A DNA stretch of 63,978 nt, the filler included, from Lenisia limosa (lineage: Eukaryota > Protista > Breviatea): NCBI GenBank assembly GCA_001655205.1. It is 16 parts of 16 records of this genome, joined end to end, with 100 filler letters (N's around TTAATTAATTAA, not from the genome) between each part and the next. Parts side by side here need not be neighbours in the genome. Positions count along the whole stretch, not along the records: positions 15,139 to 17,660 come from LPNZ01001164.1; 15 more parts are not named here. One strand, 5' to 3'. The position numbers were made by a program, and so were the translations under genes. The notes below the pieces were generated by a model. That model was not told where the DNA came from. It searched no databases and saw only the letters and a program-made list of their open reading frames with translations. Of the stretch, positions 15,024 through 17,814 are shown in pieces. Every line of letters begins with the position of its first letter. Position 1 is the stretch's first letter.

Positions 15024-15711
15024 GTGGGCCGGCGGGGGNNNNNNNNNNNNNNNNNNNNNNNNNNNNNNNNNNNNNNNNNNNNTTAATTAATTAANNNNNN
15101 NNNNNNNNNNNNNNNNNNNNNNNNNNNNNNNNNNNNNNCAATCTGACTGACAAAGAGGGATTAATGAAACAAAGGGTATAAAAAGGGTATAAATGGGGAC
15201 AGTTATAAGCTCTAAAGTGACTTGGTAGAAGGTATACTACAGACGGGACACTCGGCCGTTTCAGGGCTTCATGGAGGTTGTTGAATCAATTATAGTCGCT
15301 ACAACATTTATATAGATATAGTGTAATACATATTATATCATATCATCATATATACTAGTACATATTATTATACAAAGCGTGGAAAACGACTGAACACGTA
15401 CCAGTTTGCAGAGAATCAAGATAAGAGGGAGACAGGCCTTCCATTAGCGGAATATCGGTTTCGTTAAATGGCGGATATTCAGAAACATTAATGGGGTAAC
15501 GCTCGGCCTTGATCCACCAAAACAGTCGACGACATAGCTAAATAATGAAACTCGTGATTGTATTTTTTCCCTTTGATTTAAGTCATTTTGTTTTTGGTAT
15601 CTTATCTTTACCTACACTACATAATAGCATATAGTATATCCATTTTAAATTACATGTATTATTGCCTTGCTTGTGCACTAACCTCAACACCAAACGGCCT
15701 GATTGGATAAC

Positions 15712-16470
15712 CATGGGCCCCGTCCCAGTTCGGCTCGGGTACGTCTGTTCCTGTTTCTATCAAAAAGGCAAAAGAGAAAACAGGATTAACATCAAACTGA
15801 TAGGGAAAACTGGGTAAATTTTCACATTGACATTAATACAGGCAGCCACACCTTTAGTCCATCTCCACCAGTCTTCCTCCTCAGCCTTGTGTGATGACCA
15901 GCCTCGGGACATCTGTCAAGGTTAGATCAAAAGATTAATGTCATTTGTGAAATACGGTTATAGCATTCATTTCACCATTCTCCCGGGAGTATCTTTCAAT
16001 TTCAAAACAGGATCTGATTTTACCAAATTGCAAACAGTAACTGTCTTCTGAGGGATATACTCTGTACAGTTTATCACTAAACAGATGCCCTACATACAGC
16101 CAAAAACTCCTCTTTGTTCTGTGCGCCCTCGTCGTCATCATCGTCATTGGACGTGGGCGAGTCTTGCTGGATGGCCCTGATTTTGGAGTCCTTGCCTTGA
16201 TCAGTGAGCATTTAAAATAAGCATTATTCTCCAATTAACCATGTTGAGTTGAATCTGAATACCCTCTACATTCCTCTCCCCTTCCAACCTTCCTCCTATT
16301 CCCCCAGGCTCACTTGATAGTGTGCAGGCCAGCGTCCTAAGTTCCTGATCATCTGCAATTCGCCAGATGTCTGTAAGCTCTTTCATGCCTGTGTGGGATT
16401 ATGCCAAAAGAAGAACAAAGTTCTATCATCCTCCATACTGCGTATCAATGTTGGCCATGAGGAATGTAGG
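15712..16470 (-). CDS. Unidentified multi-exon gene fragment with an acidic stretch
   Basis: Phase-consistent exons give MKELTDIWRIADDQELRTLACTLS then SKDSKIRAIQQDSPTSNDDDDDEGAQNKEEFLAV, with GT-AG boundaries. Confidence 0.45.
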
Positions 16471-16902
16471 GTCATCTTTGCTGGTAGCTTTTATCCAACT
16501 CTTGGCAGGTCTTAGTCTGGTTATGGTTGGGTAGAAGAGAACGCAGAGCAGAAAAGAAGTATGTGACGATTCTTTACAGTGAGGAATGCGTAGGGAATGG
16601 GGAAAACAGGAAGTTGTAAATATGCAAATACTTTTTAAACCGTTCAATGAATTTTCTGAGCGCGCAGAAGCACTAAAAAAGGCATTCAAGGAATGTGAAA
16701 AAGGGCCAAGGGCTAAAATGGCCGCCCGATCCCGAACCGGGTAAGCTCTTGTCACAACAATATTTCAGAAAATCGACCTCTTTCCAAGCGGTTTCTGTCT
16801 GTTTACGTGAGTGTAATTTAAAAACTAAGACTGGCTTGTGGACTTTTTTTCTGAGCGGCAGGTTTTTGGAATACCATCTAAAGACTAACACAACTTTCAA
16901 AA

Positions 16903-17544
16903 ATGGAATTACTCCTCGGACTTCTCATCTATGGATGTGTTGCCGCCTTCCTTATGTCCTACGGACTTGGTAAGTGATTTTTTTTTGGCCGCTTTGTCAA
17001 CTAACCTCCCTTTATTATTTTCTTCAACCAAATAGGAGCCAACGACATCGGTTTGAGGGCCATTGTTATACTTTTCAAACAGATTTCTTTTACTGCTGTT
17101 ATAGTTCTTCTTTTTAAGAACCAGTTTGACTTTTTCTTTAGGAAACAGTGAGTGGATCAGGCACCGTCTTCTTTGAGCTTCTCAAACAGTTGTCAATCCT
17201 CTCTCTAGTTTGAATACTTGGCTTGTTCCCATTAATTACACTAATATTGCCTTGAAATGCCCATTATTTTGACCATTTTTGCCACTAACCACTTATATCC
17301 CCTCTCTTCAACCATTTCTCAACTCTACAGCTTGTAAGTGGGGTGGCTGACGGAATATTGATAATCTTGGTGTTAATATTGCTTTTTGAAGCTAGATGAG
17401 GCAGAACTCAACAGTTCAACATGGATCAACATTGTCTTTAAAATGGTTCTCGATCATTCGCGTGACAGCCGATCCCCCTGGCAATAATTTGACCGAAGTT
17501 TAGTGGGAACTGCTGTCGGATCCGGCGCTCTGTCAATCAATCAG
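16903..17544 (+). CDS. Inorganic phosphate transporter of the PiT/PHO4 (SLC20) family, 5' part with microexons
   Basis: Exons 16903-16969, 17036-17050 (15 nt), 17142-17147 (6 nt), 17331-17333 (3 nt) and 17504-17544 join to MELLLGLLIYGCVAAFLMSYGLGANDIGNTLGTAVGSGALSINQ. This matches the PiT N-terminal signature GANDxxNxxGTAVGSG. Confidence 0.88.
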
Positions 17545-17814
17545 GTGAGAAGTCTTTTGTTGTCAGCAGTCTGATATTTTCGCGGCTTTGTTGCAGTGGG
17601 CAAAATAGGCCTTGTGGATTTCGCTGGAAGAGATGGCTGGATAGCTGGGGTTTTAGCGGGNNNNNNNNNNNNNNNNNNNNNNNNNNNNNNNNNNNNNNNN
17701 NNNNTTAATTAATTAANNNNNNNNNNNNNNNNNNNNNNNNNNNNNNNNNNNNNNNNNNNNATATCGTATGAATAAAGGGGATAAATGATGGAGGTGTATA
17801 GAGCCCCCCCTTAC

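Follow-up and report, generated by a model that had tools for sequence, protein, structure and literature searches.

Phosphate transporters of the PiT family carry the signature GANDVANA, and the Asp of this signature is essential in human PiT2 (PMC3126765). The structure of TmPiT assigns the binding of Na1 and phosphate to N21 and D22 and that of the third sodium to T29 (PMC7413737). Very small exons have been described in other gene families. In land plants, 1-nt exons were validated in APC11 and VPS55, and an adjacent pair of 5-nt and 12-nt exons was validated in rice; GTRAGT donors are conserved beside the ultra-short plant exons, and plant microexons have more detained flanking introns, which are spliced after transcription (PMC8831610). 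A 1-nt exon was also validated in Fusarium CYP621A (PMC12940212). Here we analyze a PiT locus of Lenisia limosa in which the signature appears to be assembled from several exons, two of them only 6 nt and 3 nt long.

The window is the whole stretch of DNA that was analyzed, 63,978 nt, and all positions count along it. On sequence evidence, its part from 15139 to 17660 (LPNZ01001164.1) carries the 5' end of a PiT/PHO4/SLC20 (PF01384-type) phosphate transporter gene. We built a local HMM from 177 natural PiT N-termini and scored it against all 190 stop-free six-frame fragments of 15139-17660. The fragment with exon 5 ranked first (E 1.6e-5, HMM positions 32-48), the fragment with exon 1 ranked second (E 4.3e-4, positions 4-23), and the GANDI fragment of the 15-nt exon ranked third (positions 21-27). 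These three are on one strand and in the correct order. The hydrophobic TM1 encoded by exon 1 directly precedes the signature, as membership in the PiT family requires, and it is 59% identical to TM1 of the Hematodinium PiT transcript P0141 (GEMP01 is given as a Hematodinium accession; PMC6642578). P0141 is the nearest look-alike for TM1, and the marine sequences P0117, P0208 and P0222 are the nearest for the stretch after the motif.

A profile made of a natural scaffold with exon-1 and exon-5 rows matched a single PDB entry, TmPiT 6L85 (E 1.9e-12). In that alignment, the 15-nt exon falls on N21/D22, the Asn of the 6-nt exon on N25, and the exon-5 Thr on T29. Single fragments are too short for such searches: they had no match in the PDB, and four of them, of 28-48 aa, had no Pfam match even at E 10. 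The HMM ranking and the 6L85 match thus bear out the initial annotation, which had assigned the locus to a PiT transporter, as the start of a PiT/PHO4-type gene. Only about 45 codons of the transporter are present on the contig, which finishes 20 nt past 17660 in a G-rich tip (..GGGGTGTTAGGGGCTATGGGGGG). PiT proteins also have a C-terminal PD001131 repeat, the second one, with a signature of its own, and PxSxT hairpin motifs, all of which would be encoded beyond this tip. For context we used a longer contig from ENA metagenome ERZ3820729 (NODE_842_length_16778_cov_29.3), in which 15139-17660 lies near the end, and analyzed its stretch L074.

The predicted exons and introns of this gene start are as follows.

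16903..16969, plus strand: exon 1, 67 nt, with the ATG, TM1 (MELLLGLLIYGCVAAFLMSYGL) and the first base of a Gly codon; donor GTAAGT, phase 1.
16970..17035, plus strand: intron 1, 66 nt, from GTAAGT to AATAG, with CTAAC 31 nt before the 3' splice site.
17036..17050, plus strand: 15-nt exon, AAATAG/GAGCCAACGACATCG/GTTTGA, encoding (G)ANDI(G); its Asn-Asp pair matches the Na1/Pi-binding N21/D22 of TmPiT.
17051..17141, plus strand: intron 2, 91 nt, with the weak donor GTTTGA, TTGAC 12 nt before the 3' splice site, and the acceptor TTTTTCTTTAG.
17142..17147, plus strand: 6-nt microexon, TTTTTCTTTAG/GAAACA/GTGAGT, with a perfect donor and 12 pyrimidines in the 14 nt upstream; it completes the Gly codon, encodes the second and invariant Asn of GANDxxN, and opens a Thr codon.
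17148..17330, plus strand: intron 3, 183 nt, from GTGAGT to CTCTACAG, with CTAAC 42 nt before the 3' splice site.
17331..17333, plus strand: 3-nt microexon, CTCTACAG/CTT/GTAAGT, with a perfect donor and 10 pyrimidines in the 14 nt upstream; it closes the Thr codon (A/CT) and opens a Leu codon (T/TG).
17334..17503, plus strand: intron 4, 170 nt, from GTAAGT to GTTTAG, with TTGAC 11 nt before the 3' splice site.
17504..17544, plus strand: exon 5, 41 nt, GTTTAG/TGGGAACT...ATCAATCAG (ending ATCAG)/GTGAGA, reading (L)GTAVGSGALSINQ; donor phase 0; its Thr corresponds to TmPiT T29.
17545..17608, plus strand: intron 5 of the likely model, 64 nt, GTGAGA...CTGAT...AAATAG.
17609..17660, plus strand: candidate start of exon 6, which may encode TM2 with its conserved Glu; an in-frame TAG is at 17642, with no donor before it.

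There is an in-frame TAA seven codons upstream of exon 1, and every coding piece shares one genomic frame. GANDI and GTAVGSG can be read directly in the DNA, and the complete signature appears only in the spliced model (GANDIGNTLGTAVGSG). The codons across the exon junctions are ..GLGANDIGNTLGTAVGSG.. / GLGANDIGNTLGTAVGSGALSINQ, and path enumeration gives IGNTL as the five residues after GAND. In each of introns 1 to 4, a branch-like YTRAY motif precedes the acceptor by 11-42 nt. The microexons have an AG acceptor with a pyrimidine tract, a branch-like motif and GT donors, and their inclusion restores both the frame and conserved residues. The initial annotation was accurate in these particulars. 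Its coordinates and flanks for the 15-, 6- and 3-nt exons were exact on direct reading and on scripted re-extraction, its joined peptide has the same residues as our codon reading across the junctions, and the strong pyrimidine tracts and consensus donors that it described at the two smallest exons are there (12/14 and 10/14 pyrimidines, perfect GTRAGT).

RNA folding of 17036-17544 found no special structure (z = -0.97). We also observed that the 3' parts of introns 1 and 3 (16980-17030 and 17264-17314) align at a constant offset of 284 nt, with about 38 of 52 bases identical, including TCTTCAACCA and CACTAACC. The score of this alignment was equaled or beaten in 31 of 500 shuffles. The intron-to-intron similarity is therefore weak, and it hints only faintly at a common origin of the two 3' parts.

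The spacing of the PiT signature is strict. About 500 natural sequences were fetched, and they contain 30 distinct motif strings. All of these read GAND, five residues, and then x-T-x-V-G, and the Asn is always third. The same spacing, again with Asn third, is found in 66 contiguous metagenome PiT genes, mostly prokaryotic, which read GAND(L/V)AN(A/S/P)(M/F)GTSVG(S/T)GA(L/V)..(K/L/R)QV. When the rows from this locus are aligned to the natural scaffold, exactly three columns between GANDIG and GTAVG are empty. The family thus requires exactly three more residues at this point, in agreement with the earlier claim that the GANDxxN motif is incomplete if the microexons are left out. The modeled motif is unusual at two positions. 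It has Gly where 28 of the 30 natural motifs have Ala and the other 2 have Ser, and it has Leu where natural motifs carry F, M, Y or I.

A degenerate exon-5 pattern retrieved 73 metagenome loci and no viral contigs. Prokaryote-type PiT accounted for 65 of the 73, seven were eukaryote-like (L003, L004, L005, L008, L015, L026 and L072), and one, L011, was not PiT. The seven are mostly Oikopleura-like, and none of the 73 loci is from a close relative. Neither GANDIGN nor an intron-split motif was found in the metagenome scan, in a profile search of 1.84 billion representatives, or in profile searches of a set of 5.8 billion, in which hundreds of PiT N-termini were covered, and none of these searches yielded a relative near enough for its intron structure to be compared. 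The 1.84-billion profile combined the natural scaffold with exon-1 and exon-5 rows, and its top matches were saturated by metazoan and Oikopleura SLC20. The 5.8-billion set was searched with a Hematodinium-like scaffold and with a P0222 scaffold. Among the sequences examined, the only other GANDI motif is in the first exon of tandem PHO4 gene fragments on marine (Tara) contigs of an alga-like eukaryote (L075-L080).

We then enumerated every GT-AG route from the Asp codon to the GGA of exon 5, allowing no more than three inner exons and no intron shorter than 35 nt. The five-residue spacing is restored by seven chains, and the number is 10 when GC donors and 20-nt introns are allowed. The chain through the 6-nt and 3-nt exons is the only one with Asn third, and it is also the only one whose inner exons have 6/6 consensus donors. 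The initial annotation had GAAACA and CTT supply the NxL residues, and among the enumerated chains this is indeed the sole well-signaled route that includes the invariant Asn. The 453-nt interval was shuffled 40,000 times, and 1.4% of the shuffles contained a five-residue chain that keeps the frame and has perfect inner donors. Perfect inner donors together with Asn third arose in 0.085%, and adding pyrimidine-rich acceptors reduced this to 0.018%. The patterns AG-N3-GTRAGT and AG-N6-GTRAGT each occur only once across the two strands of the 11.5-kb contig stretch L074 (23 kb in all), and both occurrences are these microexons. Among all AG-N(1-15)-GTRAGT sites on the contig, the upstream flanks at the 6-nt and 3-nt sites are the most pyrimidine rich. 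We therefore favor a model in which the 6-nt and 3-nt exons are probably real and most likely included constitutively, restoring the invariant spacing in TM1 of the PiT gene.

The gene may be followed a short way beyond exon 5. A phase-0 exon 6 (ATAG/GCC..) gives Q/ALWISLEEMAG, which resembles QALIIAAVMEFSG of P0208 and P0222. This candidate, QALWISLEEMAG, contains Glu, but relative to the family register it lacks one residue, and its frame is stopped by the TAG at 17642. The Glu conserved in TM2 of the family is E55 in hPiT2 and E70 in hPiT1. In a different frame, WGFSGVLGAMGG is encoded by the last 35 bases. The TAG may reflect an error at the assembly tip, odd splicing, or gene decay. We considered and dropped frame 1 of exon 6 (AVGKIGLVDFAG) as the true continuation, because it is possible only with a GT..TT intron and because the reading in frame 2 is closer to the relatives. 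As a separate observation, 17609-17660 together with L074:1-72 (minus strand) contains three overlapping codings of the form (E/D/G)(F/M)xG in three frames (VDFAG, EEMAG and GFSG).

The position of intron 5, phase 0 after the Gln of ..LLQ / ..INQ, is matched exactly in the Oikopleura-like PiT loci L005 (700-712), L008, L015 and L072. In L003 (440-455), an intron lies one codon upstream of the intron 1 position. The motif of the Oikopleura-like marine metagenome PiT, GANDVANPFGTSVGSG, is unsplit.

The other genes on the contig are all in short exons with short introns, which marks the host as a compact, intron-rich eukaryote, with about 40% G+C. A head-to-head neighbor gene lies on the minus strand at 15358-16386, about 515 nt from the PiT start codon. 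It has at least five short exons (e.g., ..KELTDIWRIADDQELRTLACTLS, ..LYRVYPSEDSYCLQFGKIRSCFEIERYSRENGEMNAITVF, ..WWIKAERYPINVSEYPPFNETDIPLMEGLSPSYLDSLQTG..*), and no Pfam match was found among its exon ORFs scanned. A Rab18-like GTPase gene of at least five short exons is at L074:9700-11300 (plus strand), and a RecA/Rad51-like exon is at L074:8153-8461 (minus strand). Near the latter, at about L074 8873 (minus strand), CACCCAG/GGTTTCGTAAA/GTGAGT with a pyrimidine-rich upstream flank is a possible 11-nt microexon. Rfam and tRNA scans of the contig were empty. The donors of the Rab18-like gene are GTTTGC, GTATGT, GTGGGG and GTGGGT. With donors as loose as these, the weak GTTTGA that follows the 15-nt exon is nothing unusual in this organism, and the two perfect GTRAGTGG donors of the microexons stand out.

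Several features of the locus count against the microexon model, namely the unusual Gly and Leu in the motif, the weak GTTTGA donor, and the TAG met by exon 6, which could mark a decaying gene copy. If the microexons were unused, either the 15-nt exon would be joined straight to exon 5 (GANDIVGTAVGSG) or the gene would be a decaying pseudogene with look-alike sites that arose by chance. We consider this unlikely. The odd motif residues fit it, as do an exon 6 that reaches TAG with no preceding donor, a gene that is cut by the contig end, and the failure of the metagenome scan and of the searches of the 1.84- and 5.8-billion sets to find relatives with GANDIGN or a split motif. However, the chance of such a chain is only 2e-4 to 9e-4, and a direct join would cost the invariant Asn and shorten by three residues a spacing that is constant across the fetched sequences. 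Exons 1, 2 and 5 are intact and in phase and have good signals, and the TAG is 38 nt from the G-rich contig tip, whose sequence is possibly unreliable. It is less probable still that another splice chain, or noncanonical splicing, supplies the residues. One candidate for this is the nearby string GGCAATAATTTG (17480-17491), which reads G-N-N-L, lies 12 nt before exon 5, and follows the pyrimidine run TCCCCCT. Such a string is found there in 1.2% of shuffles, and exon 6 also hints at odd junctions. However, GGCAATAATTTG does not fit the frame, lacks both a preceding AG and a following GT, and would be usable only with a gap of 12 nt. Its TTTGAC probably serves as the branch site, as the corresponding motifs do in introns 2 and 3, and the string is probably a product of chance plus that branch site. 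The remaining chains have poor donors and lack the Asn.

The microexons could also be real but alternatively included, so that skipping switches the gene to an in-frame inactive or altered transporter. The initial annotation had suggested such a switch, and one part of its proposal stands: exon sizes of 15, 6 and 3 nt preserve the frame, and IGNTL would be replaced by IGNM when CTT is skipped, by IAL when GAAACA is skipped, and by IV in the direct join. The weak donor after the 15-nt exon is consistent with a switch, and regulated microexons are known, for example the 3-bp microexon of Drosophila hth (PMC7392893) and that of Trichoderma Xlr2 (PMC11121469). The other part, a splicing switch on transporter activity, was drawn solely from the sizes being multiples of three and found no further support. 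Coding microexons in one frame, away from a phase change, must sum to a multiple of three anyway. The microexons bear the strongest splice signals on the contig, and such maximal signals are the signature of constitutive exons and argue for constitutive inclusion. No regulatory element was found, and a dead membrane protein would be a costly means of down-regulation. Alternative inclusion is therefore doubtful in our view. We give as little credence to a more specific scheme, in which phosphate-responsive inclusion would set the TM1 register, from the Na1/Pi-binding Asp to the Na-binding Thr, and turn the transporter on or off, or to a recent burst of intron gain that placed five introns in about 130 coding bases.

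Under constitutive inclusion of both microexons, the first 45 or so codons would be distributed over exons of 67, 15, 6, 3 and 41 nt, separated by GT-AG introns of 66-183 nt, and each short intron would be recognized singly, by intron definition. The nine bases of the two microexons would then supply Asn-Thr-Leu between the Asn-Asp pair of the 15-nt exon and the Thr of the G-T-x-V-G in exon 5. Donors perfectly complementary to U1 (GTGAGTGG and GTAAGTGG) and strong pyrimidine tracts may offset the missing exon sequence. On the 3-nt exon, the acceptor AG would overlap the U1 site, and the flanking introns would therefore have to be removed one after the other, not together. The detained introns of plant microexons (PMC8831610) fit such ordered removal. 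The nine bases would set the TM1 register between Asn-Asp and Thr, so any skipped form should be inactive. We infer the actual use of the microexons in the mRNA, their splicing order and their function from the DNA sequence.

If this model is true, the locus is a clear case outside plants and animals of adjacent 6-nt and 3-nt exons that are indispensable for the ion-binding helix of a transporter. Standard gene finders would mis-annotate it, since the direct join yields a plausible-looking protein that is three residues short. It would also provide a data point on the minimum exon length that an intron-definition spliceosome tolerates and on the removal of introns in order. The finding leaves the general understanding of PiT transport and of microexons unchanged. 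Both exons of 1-3 nt and neighboring microexons have precedents in other systems, and this case is a further instance in a known family.

The comparison with known systems also modifies three statements of the initial annotation. It had placed the three consecutive microexons in a catalytic motif. However, the residues that correspond to the TmPiT binders N21, D22 and T29 map to the 15-nt exon and exon 5 (PMC7413737), and the 6-nt and 3-nt exons contribute the spacer that includes the second Asn. It had put 3 nt near the lower limit of exon size, but 1-nt exons are validated in plants and Fusarium (PMC8831610, PMC12940212). The rarity that it claimed for consecutive microexons was overstated, given the adjacent 5-nt and 12-nt exons validated in rice (PMC8831610).

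Compared with PiT/PHO4/SLC20 proteins such as TmPiT (6L85), the locus has the same order of elements: TM1, then GANDxxNxxGTxVGSG, and then, in the candidate exon 6, a putative Q-A-L...E-x-x-G of TM2, with Asn-Asp and Thr aligned to N21, D22 and T29. It differs in reading GANDIGNTL, with Gly for Ala/Ser and Leu for Phe/Met, and in a signature that is split over four exons in our model, whereas the signature is within one exon in all other genomic PiT sequences fetched. The microexons resemble those of land plants (PMC8831610), which are coding, no longer than 15 nt, located in conserved domains, missed by annotation, equipped with strong GTRAGT donors, and sometimes adjacent. RNA-seq and RT-PCR support the plant microexons, which are conserved plant-wide, whereas the present ones belong to a different lineage and gene family and are predicted from DNA. 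The 1-nt exon of Fusarium CYP621A (PMC12940212) is alike in that a tiny exon, deduced from protein conservation, is needed for a conserved protein of a microbial eukaryote. However, it stands alone in a P450 gene and is shared by orthologues, whereas two adjacent exons contribute to a transporter motif here. Drosophila homothorax, with its 3-bp microexon (PMC7392893), and Trichoderma Xlr2 (PMC11121469) also have very small exons, whose inclusion alters protein function. Alternative use was shown experimentally in those two genes, whereas at the PiT locus the splice signals are maximal and nothing points to alternative use.
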